From positions 10,850,001-10,914,000 of the forward strand of contig OZ176052.1 of NCBI GenBank assembly GCA_964247055.1: 64,000 nt of DNA, written 5' to 3'. The notes beneath the pieces are model-generated. The model worked only from the letters and a program-made list of their open reading frames with translations. It was not told the origin of the DNA and did not search any database. How positions within the stretch are numbered: position 1 is the stretch's first letter; every line of letters begins with the position of its first letter. Shown piece by piece: positions 16,821-60,557 of the stretch. Position numbers and translations under genes: made by a program. This stretch comes from Paragordius varius. Its lineage: Eukaryota > Animalia > Nematomorpha.

Positions 16821-17572
16821 ATGATGGGTATGTTTTTTATTATTTTTTAGATATTTCGAAAATATTTTTATACAATGATTTAACCGCATATGTTGATAAG
16901 GCCGAATATAAAATTTTTGTTAATAATAACTATATTAATCCAATAATTCAACAAGGTCCTACATGTGGCTTAGTTTTATTATCTATGATAAGCGGGATGA
17001 GTGTGGACAAAATATATAATATTGCTAAATCATATAAATTTACAAACTGCGGAGAAATATTCTCTATTGTTCATTTCAACAAATTAGCTATTATGTGTGG
17101 ACTTGATTCAACCCTCAATTCTTTAGACGATTCAATAACATATAATTTTTTCGAATATATTGCGAATGGAAAATTGATTATTTTAGCATATGATTCTGAT
17201 AAGGATTTTAGGCCTTGTTGTGTCAATGGTACTAAAGCTCATTGGGCTGTTTTAACAGGGTTTGTATTTGTCCTAAAATCGGAATCATGCCACATTTCCA
17301 CCTCACCTCTTTTAAACTATAAAAATGTGTATAAACATGAAGCAAGTAGAAAAATTTTAGAACCTCTTGACCTATTTCTCATAGCACAACATGGTAAATC
17401 GAAAAACAGTGCTGTCTGGGCCTATAATGATCTTGTTAAGAGTAACAAAAATTTAATGGATATGGGAGACCATAATCGTCAAAGATTAGGCTATCATAAT
17501 GGACATATTGATTTAAATTTAACCCTTGCCAATCAATATTTAGTTATAACGCCTCCTCCATATCTTTTTTAG
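16821..17572 (+). CDS. ACTMAP: Actin maturation protease (C19orf54/UPF0692 family)
   Basis: Motifs PIIQQGPTCGLV (catalytic Cys), AYDSDKDFRPC...GTKAHWAVLTG and QHGKSK...W...V.SN. Start is either ATG 16821/16824 plus a 23-nt intron (16828-16850), or unspliced ATG 16787. Confidence 0.88.
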
Positions 17573-42064: not shown

Positions 42065-45000
42065 ATGGATTTCCTACCGTTGATTCTATCAATTTATTAT
42101 TACCTAAAATGGATTTTTAATGGACGAAGCCAGGAGCAATCCGATTTGTGTGCTTTTTACGATCTAGGAAATGTAATTGTGAATAAATATGAAACAGATT
42201 CAAAATATTTAGGGTTTACGCTTGATGCAGAACTTTTAGCCATGAAGGATCATTGGTATATATTTGATTCCAAAAAGTTTCAAATCTTGACAGCAAACTT
42301 GGGTCATTCCTATTTGAGGATGGGTGGTACTGCTGCTGATATGGTTATTTTTGAACCCAGTCATCTTATTGTTAATGAGTCATTTTGCCAATCACTTAAA
42401 TATAACCGAGAAACGAAAAATTTTACAATGCTAAACAAAAGTTTGCGTACTAATTGTATTGTTAGTCCAACCTCAATTAAATTATCCACCACATTGTGGG
42501 ATAAAATTAATTATTTCATATTAACCCTAAAACCTGGTTGGGAATTTATATATGGACTTAATGCTATGTTACGAAATTCTAAAAACGGATCTTGGGATCC
42601 TTCCAATGCCATTAAGCTCCTTGAGCATTCCTATTTGCAACATTTTCGCTTTCATCTTGAATTAGGCAATGAACCTGGTGAATATCCTGGTGTTTTTAAA
42701 ACTTGGATATCCCCACAACAATTAGCAAATGATTTTACATCGTTAAAATTGCTACTTGAAACAAGTTTAATTAATTAATAGTACGCAGAAAATATTAGCC
42801 GAAGTCTACCAGTTGTCATTGGACCCGATCTAGTAAATTAGAAATATATAATTTTATTTATGAGTTCTTTTTAATATTTGTTACCCCATTTATTATAATT
42901 AACATTTTCCATTCTTAAAAAATAATTAAATTAATGTTCTTTAGCTTTTATAAAAACGGTTCCAAAATGGTTGCTTTTTTATGTGAAAATAAAACCTACA
43001 TTAATATCGATTCTGCAATAAAGCGATTAAATTTTATATGAAAAACTTACAATTACATAAAGATATATTTTATAATTGGCTTTTAAAAATGTGCTTCTAA
43101 AGAAAATCATTTTTATTAGGTATGGCGAAAACAATGTCTTATTAGGCCAATATTTTATATATTTTTCTAAAACTCTTTAAAATCGAAACGTGTTTTCACA
43201 TTACGCAAATATAAAGCAAATTTTATAAATCAATATAATTGGTGGAAAAAATATTTTTGCACAGTTTTTGATCATAACTCTGAAAAAAATAAATTTATAA
43301 CATATTAATTTAAATTAAAAAATTTAATTTTACTTTTTCACAACCCATAAAAATTGTATTATTTTAAAAATATTTTTTTTATTCCTAGTTAGTTTTTTTT
43401 ATTTTTTTCGCGCACCGTGTAACAACAAACTTCTGATATTATTTTTTATGTTTTATTATTAATTTGGCGATATCCTAGAATTTTTTGCAGTTATTAATTT
43501 TTCATTATTAATCCTACCTCTTTTATAATTTGTAGTGGCCTTTTATTAAATAAATGCGTAATTCTTAAACCCTTAAAACTTCAAAAACTTGCCTGTTCAG
43601 GATTGGCAGTGATGATAAATAATGCAGGTAAATTGTCATATGTTACACATAATGCACAAATCTGATGCACTATTCACTAAATAATGTGACTGCCACCGAG
43701 TTTATTCTGGTAAAAATTTACTTGATTTTAATAAGTGTGTGAAATTAATCGTCTGCTGACGGTTAATAATTATATTTAGTGGTGTACTCTTAATAACCAT
43801 TAATTACCGATGATTTTTACTACTTCCATCATTAAACAAACATAAAGTAAATTCACCAAAATCTATACGGTATATTAAAAACAACTTTGTTTGCCAGGAT
43901 GGTATCAATGACACAATGGCCGATCAAACTTATCTCTCGCAATTCCTTGAACAATTACAAACAAATAGTCAAGGGATGAATAGATCTACACCTATTTTAG
44001 ATCGTATATCATGGCATCATTATTACATAAGTGGCCCCAAAGCTACGATGGAAAAGTTTATAAATGCCGATATCTTGGACTCTCTAATACCGAAAATAGA
44101 TTCTGTTAATCAGGTCGTGCAAAACCTGACGACGACACTTAGGCACACTCCAGTATGGTTGGGGGAGGGTAGTAATGCTTGGAGCAGTGGGGCCCCAAAC
44201 ATATCTGACAGGTTGATTTTCTTTTAGAAAAAATTAGATTTTACAAGATTTATTGGAGAAGAGAGATGGATTCCATATAATTTATTAAAACATGGAAATG
44301 AATATAATTAGTTATATAACCTCAGTAGTTATTAATGACTAATTAAATATTCTTTTGTTTAAAATAAAAAAATTTAGCTGTTGTTGAGCTAAAAAATCGT
44401 TTTTTTATAAAATATCTTGCCTTTCGCTAAAATATTAGATATATTGCTGGTTTTATGTTTTTGGACAAACTTGGACAATGTGCCATGCGTGGTCTCAAAG
44501 TTTTCATTCGACAATCTCTTTACATGGGCCATTATGCTTTGATTGGGTTGGATCTTAACCCAAATCCCGATTATTATATAGCCGTTTTGTTTAAACGGCT
44601 TGTTGGTCATCGTGTTATTGTTATACCCAATCAACCCATATTATGCAGTAAATTCTTTAGTATTATATGTAATGAACAAAATAAAACATACTCAATAGAA
44701 TTTTACAAAAAGGGCATATTTAAAAATTAAAGTTTTTTCTCAAAAGAATTTCAAGTCTGTAAATATTTCAAATTACTTTTATAAAATTATTAAAACTATT
44801 TATGATTGGCTAGATTCATTTTTACTTTTTTTAAATTAAAAAATGGTGTTTACTCTATTTATATGTAATGATATTTATTTGCTTAACCAAAAATTATAAA
44901 TTTTATATTTTCGGCGCTAATTGATTAATACTTTTTAAAAATTAGTGATTTCTTGGATTTTTCGTCGATCAATAATAGTTGGTAATGATTCCGAATTTAA

Positions 45001-52338: not shown

Positions 52339-55300
52339 TTAATTTTTGATTGTCAAAGTTTGTTGCTCTAGTGTTGGGGCGAAATTATTTTTTGGTTTAG
52401 TGATAATTAAAGTTTGTTGTTTTGGTAGTATTACAAAAGATTTAGAACCTTGATCATTTTCATTATTCATATTATTACTATTTTTATACTGACTAAAGAT
52501 GCCTGTAGCCAAAATAACAGGCGAAGAGTGTCTGGAAAGATTGGAAGTTCTATGTGGGGACGATACTTTTCCAGCTTTAGTGACAACTATTTCAGGGTTA
52601 CTTTTGCGGTTAAACCGAGCAATTTTATCGCGCACGTTAGAACCGGAAATACCAACTGCTTTATTCAAACTCCTGATTTCATCATAGGTTTTAATTGTGC
52701 TAAACTTGCTTTTTGATAAATCATGGTTACCCCTCTCTGCCCTCAGCAAGATTGGATTGTTTAAAACAAGATTATTGCTTTTATCTTTATATTCTAAGTA
52801 TCTATCATCATCGGTATTTGTTTCGTTAGTGTCATTGCAATTAATATTGCCACGATTTTTTCCATGACTGACATGGACCGGCTGATGCTTATGTTTATAA
52901 CGCTTGAAATGGGCCAAGGAACAATTGTGCCCAGGCTTTGGGTCAATGGTAACATGGCCCCATTTCGGATCAATTTTTGTCACCATATCTTCTTCATTAT
53001 CGAGTCCGATGATGCCATTCCCAGCAAATGAGTCATCATTTGTTTTAAAGTCTGCGATATTGGCATGCTCATAAATGACATCATTTTCATAATTGTCAGA
53101 ATTTATGTTTTCGTTGCTATGGAAATGTTGTAATTCATCATTTGAAAAAGAATTGGTATTATGGTGTGTTCCATTGAGGTAACCCCCACGTTCCCATACA
53201 TACTTTTGATACTGATTGTCTATATTAATATTATTAAAAACTGCATGATTGTTTGTTTCGTTTTGAAACCGATTAGATAAAATTTCTTTCTTCGTATTTT
53301 TGTAAGCGGGCAAGTCAATATTCACTGTTTTTTGGCGAGTAGTACAAGTGTGTACAACATTGTTATCATTATTAATATTATGGTAAGGTGAATATATATT
53401 ATAGGCAGACGATACGTCTTTTTCATTTTCAAACGATAATTGCGTACTCGGTGACGATAAAAGACTGGACGAATAATTGTTGCGAAGATGGCGTGCTGAA
53501 TTGGAATCTCTTATTTCCGTTTCCGTTAACCTGCGCTGATAAGGTTCGTCCGTGACACTTAATTGATTATTATCATTTGATCGGATGTTTGACATGGAAT
53601 CCCTACCATCTCCATTTTCTCCATTATTATTGTTCTTATTAAACCGTGATTGTTTTAGCCGGCGTCTGTGCTGCTTATGCAAATAACGGGCTTTATTATC
53701 AACGTCCAAAGCCAAGCAATGAGAATCCATGTTTGTGGGCAATTCACCGACGGGTTTAGCGGATAAAATGACTGAGCTATCGCCTCGACCTGAATCGTAC
53801 CCACCGCTAATTGATTTTGCGTCAGGGCGAATTGGGAAATCTTTGCAAGTATCATTATCACTTTTATTAGGCTTGGTACCATTCATATTGAGGTAAAAAA
53901 CGCGATGTAATGATTTGGGTGGTTTGGGCCGTAGCAAACATGTGTTTTGACAATCCGTATTCTCTTTTTGACTTTTATCGTAGGTATATTTATTAGATTG
54001 CACATTGGATGGAAGTATAGAAATTTCTTGTGGTTGAAAATGACAACGATAAAAATCATCTCCATTAGGACATGAGTGTGTCATGATATCTAGCGGTAAC
54101 TGATTATGGGTATCATGGCCTAAACTTTTATTTCTGGCTTTGGGTGATGGCGGTAGCTTTGTGTTCATGTTTGTGTATACCCAATCATTGTTGATGACAT
54201 AGATGTTTTGGGAGACAGATGGATTGGAGGTAGGGCTACTTGATATATTTTTGGGTTTATCCATGAAATTTGCCATATTTTCATGGCTTGCATCAAATGT
54301 ACTGTTGGCGCAAATGGGTTGTTGAAGATAATGTATTTGTTGAGCTATATTATCACAGTTATCGGTTTGATGGGTGTTTTGAATATTAGCGCAAGGAATG
54401 GATTCATGATTATCATTCTTAATATCCTGATCCCCAAGTTCGCAATGTTTTAAGATTTTTGATATATGGTTTACATTATTATCTTGAAAATTGAAATCGA
54501 TCATATTTTTATTGTTGAAATTATTATAAACTGGTAATGAATTGGACTTCCCAACTTTGTGTTCGGTGGTCGTAGAGCCAGGTAAATATATTAACCTTTC
54601 ATGTTTTGTAGTTTTAGGCGTTATATTTTTTGATTTGTTTAGAATACTATTGCTGTCATTTGTTAAATTAATATAATGTGTTTGAAGTAAAACCGCGGCA
54701 TTTTTAATTTTTGGTTGCTCCATCGCTCTTTGTTGCTGTTTTATGGTAACGTATGCTTTAGGTTGCGTGTTTGTATTGTAGGTGGTAGTTTTTGTTATTT
54801 GTGGAGAAGAATTAAATGAGTCAAATTTTTTTAAAGCTTTAAATCGATCAGAGTGACTACTTTTACCATTCATTTCCTCGTCCGCTTCGCCATTATCGGA
54901 AATTATTAGGGCTTTGGTGCTTGTTGTGAGGCCTTTTTTATCGCCTATTGATTTCATTGCTAAACTGTTAACATTGAAAGGGCCAAGACCATTTTTCAGT
55001 CTGTTGGTATCGATAGGTGACGTGGCATTTTGATTACCATTACGGATCCAAATTTTAGCTATTTCATTTGTGGTACAGTTAGCGCCAATATTTGCATCAA
55101 CCGAGTGTTGCCGATTTGAAAGATCAGGACTTACAGGGCCATTTTCCTCCCAATCATAAAGATGGTCATCTGTTATACCAAGTCGCATCATCCAATCATT
55201 GAAAAGATTGGAAATAACTTTGTAATCAGGTACGTCATAGTAATCAGTGAGTTCTGTCAAGTATTGGTATAAAAAGAAAAGTTCGATAAAAGTGTTTGAT

Positions 55301-56259
55301 GACGTGTTGTTGCAGTGTAAATCGGTGTTTGACCTGTATCGCCTTTTAGTATCCGAGTTTGGGGGATTGACAAGCAATTCATAAAAGTTACAATGTTCTT
55401 TCAATCTAGCCACCTGATCTTTATCCTTTATTTTGCGCCAAGGGAGATAACCCAAACTTAACTCCACCAACACATAGAAAAATGACCACATGTCATCGAC
55501 CCGACACAAATCTTTGTTTTTGTGAGCATTCAAAGAGGCATATCTAACCGTGCCTCGGAAGCCTGCCGCAGACCTTGGAGCTCGTGGTTTCCCAGTAACA
55601 TCGGTGTATTGGCGTGACAGACCGAAATCTAACGCATATATAGTTTTATCTCTGGCATATGTTTTATCGCTTTTCCTAGGCCAAGATGATAAAGAATCAA
55701 AAAGAGTGGAATCCGATGAAATGGCGAAATTAGATGGTTTTATATCACGATGTAGAAATCCGGCTTCGTGGATACTTTCGATAGCCTTAAGAATTTGTTT
55801 AGCAACCAGAACCACTGTTTCTGGACTGAAGCAACATCCAGGTCTTAGACGTCGTAATTGTGCCAAGTTTTTCCCTTTAAGTGACATCACCATATAACTG
55901 TATCGTTCATTACGACCGCATCCATAAAGCTTACAAAAATTTGGTTTATTTTGAAGTCTTTTAAGCACATAAACCTCCATTTTGAGAACCTGCTTTGAGG
56001 GAGCAAGGGGCATTAAAAAATCATTGGGAATATTTTTGGGATGACTAGATAAGCACACCAATGGTTCAATTTTAATAGCAACCCGTTGATTTGACTGATC
56101 GCTAAGATCAATAGCTTCGTATATGTCACCAAATCCTCCTCCGCCAATTTTACGAATAATTTTCCACCGATCTTTAACGATTTCCCCGCTGTTAACTTCC
56201 ATTAAACTGTTGATTTTTAATTTTCTTTTACCATCGCTTATATAATCATGCGTTTCCAT
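52339..56259 (-). CDS. TTBK: Tau-tubulin kinase (CK1 group), apparently intronless, ~1306 aa from ATG 56259 (1343 aa from 56370)
   Basis: Motifs VKDRWKIIRKIGGGGFGDIYEA, KQVLKMEV, HRDIKPSNFA, DFGLSRQY, AGFRGTVRYAS, DDMWS; long low-complexity tail. Confidence 0.92.
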   Translation of the reverse strand: METHDYISDGKRKLKINSLMEVNSGEIVKDRWKIIRKIGGGGFGDIYEAIDLSDQSNQRVAIKIEPLVCLSSHPKNIPNDFLMPLAPSKQVLKMEVYVLKRLQNKPNFCKLYGCGRNERYSYMVMSLKGKNLAQLRRLRPGCCFSPETVVLVAKQILKAIESIHEAGFLHRDIKPSNFAISSDSTLFDSLSSWPRKSDKTYARDKTIYALDFGLSRQYTDVTGKPRAPRSAAGFRGTVRYASLNAHKNKDLCRVDDMWSFFYVLVELSLGYLPWRKIKDKDQVARLKEHCNFYELLVNPPNSDTKRRYRSNTDLHCNNTSSNTFIELFFLYQYLTELTDYYDVPDYKVISNLFNDWMMRLGITDDHLYDWEENGPVSPDLSNRQHSVDANIGANCTTNEIAKIWIRNGNQNATSPIDTNRLKNGLGPFNVNSLAMKSIGDKKGLTTSTKALIISDNGEADEEMNGKSSHSDRFKALKKFDSFNSSPQITKTTTYNTNTQPKAYVTIKQQQRAMEQPKIKNAAVLLQTHYINLTNDSNSILNKSKNITPKTTKHERLIYLPGSTTTEHKVGKSNSLPVYNNFNNKNMIDFNFQDNNVNHISKILKHCELGDQDIKNDNHESIPCANIQNTHQTDNCDNIAQQIHYLQQPICANSTFDASHENMANFMDKPKNISSSPTSNPSVSQNIYVINNDWVYTNMNTKLPPSPKARNKSLGHDTHNQLPLDIMTHSCPNGDDFYRCHFQPQEISILPSNVQSNKYTYDKSQKENTDCQNTCLLRPKPPKSLHRVFYLNMNGTKPNKSDNDTCKDFPIRPDAKSISGGYDSGRGDSSVILSAKPVGELPTNMDSHCLALDVDNKARYLHKQHRRRLKQSRFNKNNNNGENGDGRDSMSNIRSNDNNQLSVTDEPYQRRLTETEIRDSNSARHLRNNYSSSLLSSPSTQLSFENEKDVSSAYNIYSPYHNINNDNNVVHTCTTRQKTVNIDLPAYKNTKKEILSNRFQNETNNHAVFNNINIDNQYQKYVWERGGYLNGTHHNTNSFSNDELQHFHSNENINSDNYENDVIYEHANIADFKTNDDSFAGNGIIGLDNEEDMVTKIDPKWGHVTIDPKPGHNCSLAHFKRYKHKHQPVHVSHGKNRGNINCNDTNETNTDDDRYLEYKDKSNNLVLNNPILLRAERGNHDLSKSKFSTIKTYDEIRSLNKAVGISGSNVRDKIARFNRKSNPEIVVTKAGKVSSPHRTSNLSRHSSPVILATGIFSQYKNSNNMNNENDQGSKSFVILPKQQTLIITKPKNNFAPTLEQQTLTIKN

Positions 56260-56462
56260 TTTTAAAGCTTCATAGTTATTGGAATATAAAGGTGGTACAC
56301 AAGAATACTTTTCCAAAAAGAAAAAATTGTTATTTTGCACATTATAACAGGGATTCGTATCAATTATCATTTATTTTAAATAAATAAAAAAAAATAATTT
56401 TCAAAGTCAAATCTTAACACACCTGCTTTTTAGGATGCGTGAATCACATATGTATATATAAT

Positions 56463-57912
56463 TTATGAATTTATTGCTGTATTTAATGCAATAAAAGAAT
56501 ATATTATACCAATTGTACCGAATAACATTCCAAATATAATGATTGACAATTCAAAATAAAAAAATTTCGTGGACAATGTTTTTCCCTTTAATTTTATGTG
56601 AAAGTAGCATGGCCAAACAAAAGATAAAAGCGTGCCGGTAAAGCAGCCAATAAGTCCCATTAAATTGTTAAAATATGGTATCATAACTGCCATAATTAAT
56701 GTTATAGCAATGAGAAATAATCTCAAAAGTATTGCCCAATTTTTAAATTTAAGTCCATTTAAATCCATGCATGAAGGAAATCTTTCATTATTAAAAAATG
56801 ACGTTTCAATTAATTCGGCCGCTGCAAAATAGGGCAGTGGGTATGAAAACAACGCCTTGCATACCAAAATAAAATTTACTAACATTTTAATCTTCAAATT
56901 TTCTAAATTGTTGGTGATGACTTCTTGAGTGTATAGTCCATATGTCACATAGCCAATATACCTAATATTACTATATATTTTACCCAAATAAGGCTTTGAA
57001 TAAAGCAGCAGCAATGTGGCTCCATTTTAACATAGGTTTGAAGTCTTCATTATGACTCAAGTTCCCTTCTAACGCTGGTAGGAACATATGAGATGTATAA
57101 CTAAAAACGATAACGCCCATAGAAACAGGAAAGTTCCATATATCAATTTTAAATTTTACATCCCGCCAATGCCAGTATTGTATTTTTAACACGCAATAAA
57201 CAATAACGATTATATTGATGAGTAAATGAACAATAGTACATGCAAAACTGAATCTCGATATCCCTGTCAGAGTTTTGATAAAGGCACATGGAATGAGGCA
57301 CAAACAACATAATGACATCCATGATACAGAGGACAATTTAACATATGGCAGAGCACCTTTCATAAGATCCCCGCACAAAACTACATATAGGATACATGTC
57401 ATAAGTAGTTCAATTAGTTGCGCCCCATTAACCACTATACTACCCCAAGTTTTTCCCCATACGGCTTGAGATATTGCCACATAACTGTTTCGTATCCTGT
57501 AATTAACGGCTACCTGAGATCTTTGTTCACAAGCTACATTGTTGTAATTAATTACTGGTCGCATTACTGTTTCTTCACGGGTTTCATATAAGCATTCAAT
57601 CAATATACAGCCCGTATAGTAACATATATAGGCTGCAAAGACCATAGCTAGTATTGCCCAATAACCGCCATTTAATACAGCATACGGCAGGCTAACGATG
57701 AACATTCCCTATGAAAAATATAAAAACGGAATGATTTTGATCATTATGAGTGGTTTAGAAAGCAGTATTACCTGAATAGCGTTCGTTACATTCCATCCTG
57801 CTTGCCAGGGTGTTATTTGGTTGCCCGGAATATCTCTATTTGTCCAAGTTGTATCCCTCCTTTCCAATTTTCCTTTTGCTCTTGTTGGCGGAAACGGTAA
57901 ATCTTCTACCAT
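56463..57912 (-). CDS. SLC32A1: Vesicular inhibitory amino acid (GABA/glycine) transporter
   Basis: Exons 57912-57772, 57708-56984, 56961-56463 (introns 63 and 22 nt). Motifs WQAGWNVTNAIQGMF, ELLMTCILYVVLCG, FSYTSHMFLPALEGN, KALFSYPLPYFAA. Confidence 0.92.
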
Positions 57913-59619
57913 TGGCTTTAGTTAGTGCTAAAGGTACAAATAAAATTATGTTTTACTCTTTTTTGTTTTTCATATTATTAAAACAGAGAATGAGATTCAC
58001 TAACTCCAATTTACTTAATGGATTCCTTCATATTTTAATAATATCCTTAAAAGTAATGATTTTTGGATATATGGCAAAACAGTTAAGAATACACTGTTGT
58101 AAAATAAATTTAATAAAGTGTCGTGACATTTTAATTAAAATAAAATATTAATGTTTATATTTGTTTCCATAAAAGTTATAGTGCGCCTCATATATTGTGT
58201 GCGAAAAACTTTATTGATTGCTTTAATGGATGTTAACGCTTCTCTAAATAGTTAATGGCGTAGAAAATAAAAATATTAATTTTATTTAATTCATATTTAT
58301 TTGGAAATTTGGCACTTCAAAAACTATTGTTGATATAAAAAAGTAATTAAAACTATTTACTAGAAGTGGTGTATTAATAAATTTATTTCATCGTCATCTT
58401 GATTTTAAAGTTTTATAAAATATATAATTAACCGCTTGCCGAATATATTATTTATATTTTTGGTTTCTAAAGACCAATATTTATCCATACTCACAATAAA
58501 TATTTTAACAATTATCTTGTTATATAATAGTTATTAAGGGGGAAATTATAGGGTTAGAGACCAGCCATGTTTATTTTTTGTATATTTTGATTGTTAGGTC
58601 CCGTCATTTGTTAAAAATCGTCATTCGATTTTAAGATACCATTATTTTCATGTCTTACATATTTTATAAAAAATTAATATATTCTTTTTTAGATGTCTTA
58701 ATGTTTTGGGCGAAAATATATTGAACATTTAATATAATATTGTAAAAGAGATCGAAACAATTTTAAAAGTGGTAAAAAACACCAAACTATTTTATGATTA
58801 ATATCGATAAATGAATGATATGTATAACACCGTCTATTTGTTTGTTAGGTATGAGTTAAAATATTTTGAAATAAAATTGGCATTTCAAATATAAACGTTT
58901 TTGTATTATTATAGCTCATAATATTTTTGCTATTTTAAAAAAGACCCACCCTATTTAAATCTTTCATCTTATCCTCATTTTGTTAATGGCTTCTAATAAC
59001 TAAACTAAATAAATCACATGTAAAAAGGGGTTAATTTGTCATTAAAAATATTCAAAATTAGGGCTATTGAAATTTTTAATATATTTATATAAATATATAT
59101 AATGCCTATTTGCCTATATATAATTTCTTCGTACTGATCAATGCTTAATCAGATACGATTTAAAATATTTGATCAAGATTGCCTATAGAAATATTATAGA
59201 TCATAAGATAAAAAATATCTGATAAAACTGGTACATCGGAAGTACTGCTTTAAAAAATTGATAAACACTTTCCGATATGATTCGATTCCGCTAAAATTAT
59301 ATCACTTTCCCTAAGAATTTTGATTCAAAAAATTTTTAAGAAGCCACAATTGCGTCTTTTTCGTCCCTAGGACTGGATCTATTAAAACTTTTCTAGGCTA
59401 AAAATATTTATTGAATTAAATGTAAATTACTTGTTTATAGTTTTTTAATAAAGCGGTTACTTTTGATATATTTTTCCTTAAATTTGAATTACAATTTAGC
59501 TTAACTTTCTTTTTAAAAGAAAACAAATATACAAAAATATATATTAAATATATAGAATTTTGCGACGATTTTTATGAAATGTAGGCTCATTCGGATTAAA
59601 TAGAAAAATTTATTCATGT

Positions 59620-60290
59620 TTTATAGAAATGCGCCGAACATGATCAGCTCAATATAAATTAGCCCCTGTATATTCCGTTAAATGGCACCTTTTGCAAAAA
59701 CACTATCCAAAAAATAAAGTTTAAACTATTTTTTTCCCTAATTTATGAGATTATCAAACAATACCCAATATATCAAACAAACTTAGCCCATCGCTTTTTG
59801 GAAAACGCCGCTGTATAGGACTTTACCATCTATAAAATACGACATCAGGCCAACATATGGTGGCTTTGAAGCAATTTTCTTTTAAGTCATTAGACTAGAT
59901 AAAGTCAATTATGAATTTAGGTATTTCCCTAAGGACAAAATAAAATAATAGGCCCTATTATGTTAAATATGCCATCATTTAAAATTAACTTGGTTTTGAC
60001 GCAATTTGAAACTTATGAGCCTGCATTTCATGCATAAAGACATAACTTTATCGCTTTTTATATTAACGAACAAGGACCCTATGTTAAATATGCCACCATA
60101 AAAAAATAGCGTGGATTTGGAGCAACTTTTGGAGAATCTATGAGACTATATGGAATCAATTATTGTTTTTTGGTTTTTCCCATATGGCGAAAATTTTAAT
60201 GAACTGCCAATTAGCCCATACGATCCTATCCTATGTTAAACAGGCCACCATATTAAGTTGATGTGGCTTGGAAACTTCGGTAAAATACCA
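59620..60290. repeat. Diverged family B-related element with short internal repeats
   Basis: GCGCCGAACATGATCAGCT and ATGAGACTATATGGAATCAAT match family B. CCTATGTTAAA(T/C)A(T/G)GCCA(C/T)CAT recurs near 59955, 60078 and 60230. Confidence 0.55.
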
Positions 60291-60322
60291 TATATTATCA
60301 ATAATCTTTTTTTTATATAAAG

Positions 60323-60557
60323 CAAGGGTCCAACACGCGGCCCTCCGAGACTTTATGTGGAGCCAGAAAAGTTTTTGAACTCCATACTGTGCAAAAATAT
60401 GCTCACAAATTTTACTAAAAATGATATTTATTAGACAATTTTTTGTAAGTCTGTATAATTGTTATATTGTGTTTCCTTTTTACAGTCTTATAATTAAAAT
60501 CCAAAATATTATTAATAAATGCCCATGCCCGCGAAGCAATTAGTATTGGACACCCTG
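60323..60557. mobile_element. Small hAT Buster-like MITE (235 bp)
   Basis: Ends CAAGGGTCCAACAC and GTATTGGACACCCTG; CGGCCC/GCCCGCG motifs; flanks ATATAAAG / GTATAACA. Confidence 0.6.

Follow-up and report, generated by a model that had tools for sequence, protein, structure and literature searches.

A highly probable 22-nt spliceosomal intron in the VGAT gene of a hairworm

Can a conserved neuronal gene of an animal contain a spliceosomal intron of only 22 nt? The question is raised by the gene for the vesicular inhibitory amino acid transporter (VGAT, SLC32) in the window, the whole 64-kb stretch of hairworm DNA analysed here. An upstream VGAT open reading frame (ORF; 56980..57705, 241 aa) terminates with KALFG followed by TAA, and the downstream frame reads YIGYVTYG... 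through to a stop codon at 56465-56463, within an ORF at 56463..57014. The two frames are offset by 22 nt (3n+1), as the earlier note had stated, and the coordinates that it gave for a 22-nt GT-AG stretch on the minus strand, 56962-56983, proved exact. The minus strand reads AAA GCC TTA TTT GG/GTAAAATATATAGTAATATTAG/G TAT ATT GGC, where slashes bound the 22 nt, which have GT..AG ends (GTAAAA...ATTAG) and a G+C content of 14%. We consider it highly likely that 56983..56962 is a genuine U2-type GT-AG spliceosomal intron of VGAT. A single VGAT gene was seen within the 64-kb window, with the 22-nt intron as its second and last. The features of the gene, the last two identified by inspection, are:

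57772..57912, minus strand: VGAT exon 1, with the ATG at 57912; 47 codons, MVEDLP...NAIQ
57709..57771, minus strand: VGAT intron 1, 63 nt, GTAATA...CATAG, phase 0, between Q and G (NAIQ/GMFIV)
56984..57708, minus strand: VGAT exon 2, 725 nt; Aa_trans profile positions 19-247
56962..56983, minus strand: VGAT intron 2 (highly probable), 22 nt, phase 2 inside a Gly codon (GG/G)
56463..56961, minus strand: VGAT exon 3, 165 codons plus the TAA stop; Aa_trans profile positions 249-408; four hydrophobic segments
56967..56973, minus strand: candidate branch-point region TAGTAAT, intron 2 positions 11-17
56470..56475, minus strand: AATAAA hexamer, possible poly(A) signal, 5 nt before the VGAT stop codon

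Joining exons 1, 2 and 3 gives 1,365 nt that encode 454 aa with no internal stop; an in-frame stop lies 4 codons 5' of the ATG. The Pfam domain Aa_trans (PF01490) matched the upstream piece over profile positions 19-247 (E 1.7e-40) and the downstream piece over positions 249-408 of 410 (E 3.1e-29), so the two pieces are consecutive halves of one domain. Together they supply the full-length Aa_trans domain by which an SLC32 / VGAT protein is recognized, and the protein is predicted to carry out vesicular GABA/glycine transport. With intron 2 retained, TAA follows immediately after the Gly codon and the product ends at residue 289 of 454, without the four hydrophobic segments; the earlier note had likewise placed the stop of the unspliced form before the C-terminal membrane helices. 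The 165 codons 3' of intron 2 are stop-free at 27% G+C, for which the chance in random sequence is about 5e-7. The 22 nt are no copy of adjoining sequence. On its 3' side, the VGAT stop codon lies only 92 nt 5' of the ATG (56370) of a TTBK-like kinase of 1,343 aa on the same strand. Either the VGAT 3' UTR is very short, or VGAT and the TTBK-like kinase are on one shared transcript.

We compared the gene with that of another hairworm. Among 1.84 billion representatives, the best match of exon 2 was the VGAT of Gordionus sp. m RMFG-2023, the Montseny horsehair worm Gordionus montsenyensis (347 bits; next 264), whose cluster includes the RefSeq model XP_065321311.1 of 539 aa. The best matches among named vesicular inhibitory amino acid transporters came from molluscs, arthropods, a brachiopod and a nemertean, at 44-56% identity. 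In a maximum-likelihood (ML) tree, the window VGAT was sister to the Gordionus VGAT with support 100/100 (68% identity), inside the protostome VGATs, with branch lengths of 0.44 for the window and 0.19 for Gordionus. Base composition was similar, with G+C at 27% in the window, 26.6% at the Gordionus locus and 26.93% in the published Gordionus assembly (Gordionus genome preprint). The window thus belongs to a hairworm other than Gordionus montsenyensis. When the Gordionus VGAT was searched against the window by tblastn, residues 88-366 matched 57882..56983 at 62% identity and residues 367-534 matched 56960..56469 at 64% identity. The query is contiguous across the site, and the gap of 22 nt lies in the window only.

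The Gordionus gene itself is interrupted at this place. In its locus L006 (OX940786.2), a 32-codon block containing stops lies exactly between FKSVFG and YVGF. The sequence at L006:12277-12372 reads TTT GG/GTATGA...CCTTAG/A TAC, a 96-nt GT..AG intron of phase 2 in the same Gly codon. The 96-nt block is left out of both annotated Gordionus VGAT proteins, the BRAKER model built with RNA-seq and the RefSeq model. Because codon and phase are the same, the 22 nt are the ortholog of an ordinary intron. The two introns share the gene, the Gly of FG/Y, phase 2, GT..AG ends, AT-richness and an in-frame stop; they differ in length, and no sequence similarity is recognizable inside them. MAFFT, applied to the DNA of both species over intron 2, aligned only the upstream exon, and protein-guided alignments were used instead. 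Intron 1, phase 0 after NAIQ, is also at a position common to both and measures 8,131 nt in Gordionus (L006:3421-11551) versus 63 nt here. Judged from the two sequences, the position of intron 2 is orthologous and its length differs greatly between the two hairworm lineages. The N-terminus of VGAT is 76 aa shorter here than in Gordionus, and tblastn on the window revealed no upstream exon for the first 87 residues of the Gordionus protein. Nothing on intron sizes could be learned from the genes next to VGAT in the Gordionus locus. In the deposited BRAKER models CAK9302745/6, Gordionus VGAT is fused with a downstream single-exon carbohydrate sulfotransferase 11-like gene (L006:3001-16159). RefSeq keeps the two genes apart, and the fused models are an annotation error in the public record.

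How well does removal of exactly these 22 nt account for the protein? We enumerated every 3n+1 excision of 1-79 nt starting no more than 36 nt from the site (n=1,971), which yielded 618 stop-free distinct products, and scored the products against an HMM built from 45 VGAT homologues. Only 8 of the 1,971 excisions had GT..AG ends. The 22-nt GT..AG excision scored 559.7 bits, the top of all 618 products, followed by a runner-up at 557.5 bits; exon 2 alone scored 351.3 bits. The best product is reached by five equivalent placements; GT..AG ends would be expected by chance in at least one of these with a probability of roughly 2%. The spliced protein is gapless at the join against 45 invertebrate and tunicate VGATs (FKALFG/YIGF or YVGF) and against the Gordionus VGAT. 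The earlier note had described the join as gapless against vertebrate VGAT.

Two other routes to a full-length protein were weighed against these scores. In one, the 22 nt remain in the mRNA, and a +1 ribosomal frameshift at GGG-UAA, of the kind known from antizyme or Euplotes genes, adds the seven residues KIYSNIR. The downstream frame is indeed open through the 22 nt (ORF 56463..57014), and a stop codon stands at the shift point. However, the frameshift product scored 546.9 bits, 12.8 bits below the spliced product, and would place a charged seven-residue insert in a conserved hydrophobic stretch, where none of the 45 homologues, nor Gordionus, has one. Neither the GT..AG ends nor the orthologous Gordionus intron would be explained by a frameshift, which we regard as very improbable. 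In the other, the first AG is used and only 13 nt (GTAAAATATATAG) are removed, leaving three extra residues, NIR, or both spliced forms are made. This excision has GT..AG ends and restores the frame too, but its product scored 551.6 bits, 8 bits lower than that of the 22-nt excision, and its insert is seen in no homologue. A 13-nt intron would moreover be shorter than the 15-16-nt introns of Stentor, the shortest cited in PMC13644364. Its use, alone or beside the longer form, is equally improbable.

An error in the assembly could also produce a broken frame, since AT-rich sequence is error-prone in long-read assemblies. The earlier note had named an assembly indel as a finding that would overturn the intron, and we looked for one in Logan contigs of four public runs (X1, X3, X5 and X12) placed on 54500-60400. 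The kind of these runs is given as '?'; coding and intergenic DNA are covered to an even depth, and the contig sets span 166-519 Mb, so the runs are DNA. Contigs from three of them crossed the 22-nt site with 0 gaps: X1 record 6 (56890-57715) with 2 letters different from the window, X3 record 20 (56450-57280) with 7, and X5 record 27 (56669-57057), which carries a different organism label, with 3. Differing by 2-7 SNPs, the contigs represent other haplotypes, all with the 22 nt. The 22 nt in VGAT are not an assembly error, and the chance that they or the frame break arose as an assembly or sequencing artefact is negligible.

Only two polymorphisms in these samples could be placed in the VGAT coding sequence, at 57085 and 57639. 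Both are non-synonymous (M to I in SHMFLP and F to I in AMVFAAY). At both, Gordionus and most homologues have the residue of the alternative allele, which makes the reference allele the derived one. The intergenic DNA 5' of VGAT varies in structure between samples at 58053, 58136-58168 and 59365-59634. X3 carries a 16-nt insertion and skips 268 nt, and three runs have loose ends at 58136/58168, a pattern that suggests a repeat with insertion/deletion polymorphism.

If the 22 nt are real, they could still be the scar of a recently dead gene, in which a 22-nt insertion broke the frame of a VGAT pseudogene and the GT..AG ends are coincidental. The frame is broken in the genomic DNA of every sample examined, the window branch in the tree is long, and rescue in RNA was not seen. 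RNA-labelled runs of this species contained a fraction of 0.00 of the sampled words of the VGAT locus. The protein databases contained no VGAT protein or transcript of the same species, the best match in the length range being 56% identical. Against a pseudogene, the insertion would have to hit the exact codon and phase of the Gordionus intron, bring GT..AG ends (the roughly 2% chance given above) and leave both flanks untouched, and it would not be a copy of flanking sequence. Both halves of the gene are stop-free and equally conserved (62% and 64% identity). VGAT is, in addition, normally single-copy and required for GABA/glycine transmission. A pseudogene is thus quite improbable, and a 22-nt intron remains our preferred reading.

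We then considered the age of the two intron positions. The intron 2 position is absent from the VGAT of Lingula, where that part of the gene is a single exon, and from that of Culex, where one exon runs from GMFIVS to the end. Intron 2 is therefore not an ancient, widely shared intron. The Culex exon begins at GMFIVS, as does the exon after intron 1 here. In a contig of a very AT-rich, compact eukaryote (L001:2939-4714, Logan SRR24390608), a VGAT intron of about 67 nt follows NAIQ, the hairworm position. A second intron of this contig, 59 nt long, was rejected as the same site as intron 2; it lies 8 nt downstream of the hairworm FG/Y, in phase 1 in the Gly of LIG. L005, where a local duplication is present, was uninformative on intron age. 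Some observations count against the 22 nt being an intron: a length at the bottom of the known animal range, a tree branch longer than that of Gordionus, the missing position in Lingula and Culex, and the non-synonymous nature of both placeable coding polymorphisms.

Canonical U2-type splicing by intron definition would account for the locus. A VGAT pre-mRNA would carry the 22 nt, and the spliceosome would join GG to G, restoring the Gly codon and giving an mRNA that encodes the complete 454-aa transporter. The donor G/GTAAAA fits the animal consensus at positions -1 to +4, and the acceptor would be TTAG/G. TAGTAAT resembles the TACTAAC-type consensus and could supply a branch A 6 nt before the end of the 3' AG, which would explain why the earlier AG at intron positions 12-13 is skipped. 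Transcripts that retain intron 2 would encode a 289-aa stump without four membrane segments and would probably be removed by nonsense-mediated decay. That the 22 nt are excised from the RNA, where the branch lies and what becomes of unspliced transcripts are inferred from the arrangement of the locus.

Further candidates for very short introns were found in the window. In a heparanase gene (Glyco_hydro_79n), a 24-nt GT..AG stretch at 42765-42788 (plus strand) contains in-frame TAA and TAG. The Pfam match covers profile positions 66-199 before the 24 nt and continues with positions 233-309 in an ORF that lies about 1.1 kb further downstream. One gene with a putative 24-nt intron, an exon of 14 codons and then an intron of roughly 1 kb (42832-43915) would fit this arrangement. 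An ACTMAP-like gene (Pfam ACTMAP-like_C, E 1e-25) has 23 nt, GTATGTTTTTTATTATTTTTTAG, at 16830-16852 (plus strand), directly after ATG ATG G; only 2-3 codons precede it, which puts this candidate beyond a homology test. We also scanned the window for GT..AG segments of 18-40 nt that link two ORFs, each at least 50 codons long. The VGAT site (241 + 165 codons) was the strongest by far in the 64-kb window, and the other matches look spurious. The exons of the heparanase and ACTMAP candidates are too short for its 50-codon test, and the scan gives no usable census. An Rfam search of the 64-kb window gave no match. The earlier note had expected ultra-short introns to be processed alongside introns of up to about 1 kb. 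The heparanase gene in the window makes this plausible, while the other VGAT intron measures 63 nt.

How unusual would such an intron be? The earlier note had put it below the usual animal size range. It does lie at the bottom of the known range, but animal introns below 30 nt are already published: in a survey of 51 metazoan genomes, myxobolid myxozoans and Dicyema japonicum had them and no others did (Hadjez et al., Mol Biol Evol 2026, PMC13644364). The same study ties tiny animal introns to parasitism, tiny bodies and compact genomes, and Nematomorpha go unmentioned in its main text (PMC13644364). The word intron does not occur in the Gordionus genome preprint, and our search of the literature on hairworm introns returned nothing relevant. 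Ultra-short animal introns are thus already known; as far as shown by the literature searched, their presence in the hairworm lineage is new.

Like the VGAT intron, the introns of Dicyema and myxobolids are GT-AG and shorter than 30 nt, with medians of 22-27 nt in myxobolids (PMC13644364). They also share a 5' motif reduced to GTa, A residues a short way ahead of the AG, and positions at which the introns of relatives are longer (PMC13644364). In those animals, however, nearly all introns are tiny and genomes are compact, whereas here 22 nt stand beside 63 nt in one gene. A gene 14 kb from VGAT seems to contain an intron of roughly 1 kb, and the sister genus has introns of 96 nt and 8.1 kb, which is again unlike Dicyema and the myxobolids. 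With one window analysed and the other VGAT intron at 63 nt, a mixed intron-length spectrum is more likely genome-wide than a median below 30 nt. Ciliates (Paramecium, Stentor), the Bigelowiella nucleomorph and microsporidia also have GT..AG introns of 15-30 nt, in which stop codons or non-3n lengths reveal retention (general knowledge and PMC13644364). All of these are protists or fungi whose introns are uniformly tiny, whereas the present gene belongs to a macroscopic animal with mixed intron lengths. A short intron class also stands beside long introns in tapeworms (about 36 nt) and in Oikopleura (about 47 nt), which resemble the hairworm in combining both in one genome. The short class would be markedly shorter here, at 22-24 nt in the window.

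We lean towards the view, with some reserve, that hairworms of this lineage are the third animal group, independent of the other two, to have introns of about 22 nt, and that they have them in a genome which is large, AT-rich and rich in repeats and which retains long introns. If this is true, intron miniaturization would be decoupled from genome compaction and recent enough to be studied between relatives. Gene finders and RNA mappers with a minimum intron of 20-40 nt would break such genes, and gene models in these genomes would be truncated or split unless the software permits introns of about 20 nt. An annotation artefact could then account for part of the reported low BUSCO completeness (71.6% in Gordionus) and gene loss in Nematomorpha. 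A 22-nt intron in a conserved neuronal gene of a macroscopic hairworm would extend the phenomenon to Ecdysozoa. It would also provide a matched species pair, in which the same intron is normal-sized in Gordionus and minimal here. Such a pair would make it possible to test how short an intron the animal spliceosome can handle and which spliceosome components have changed.
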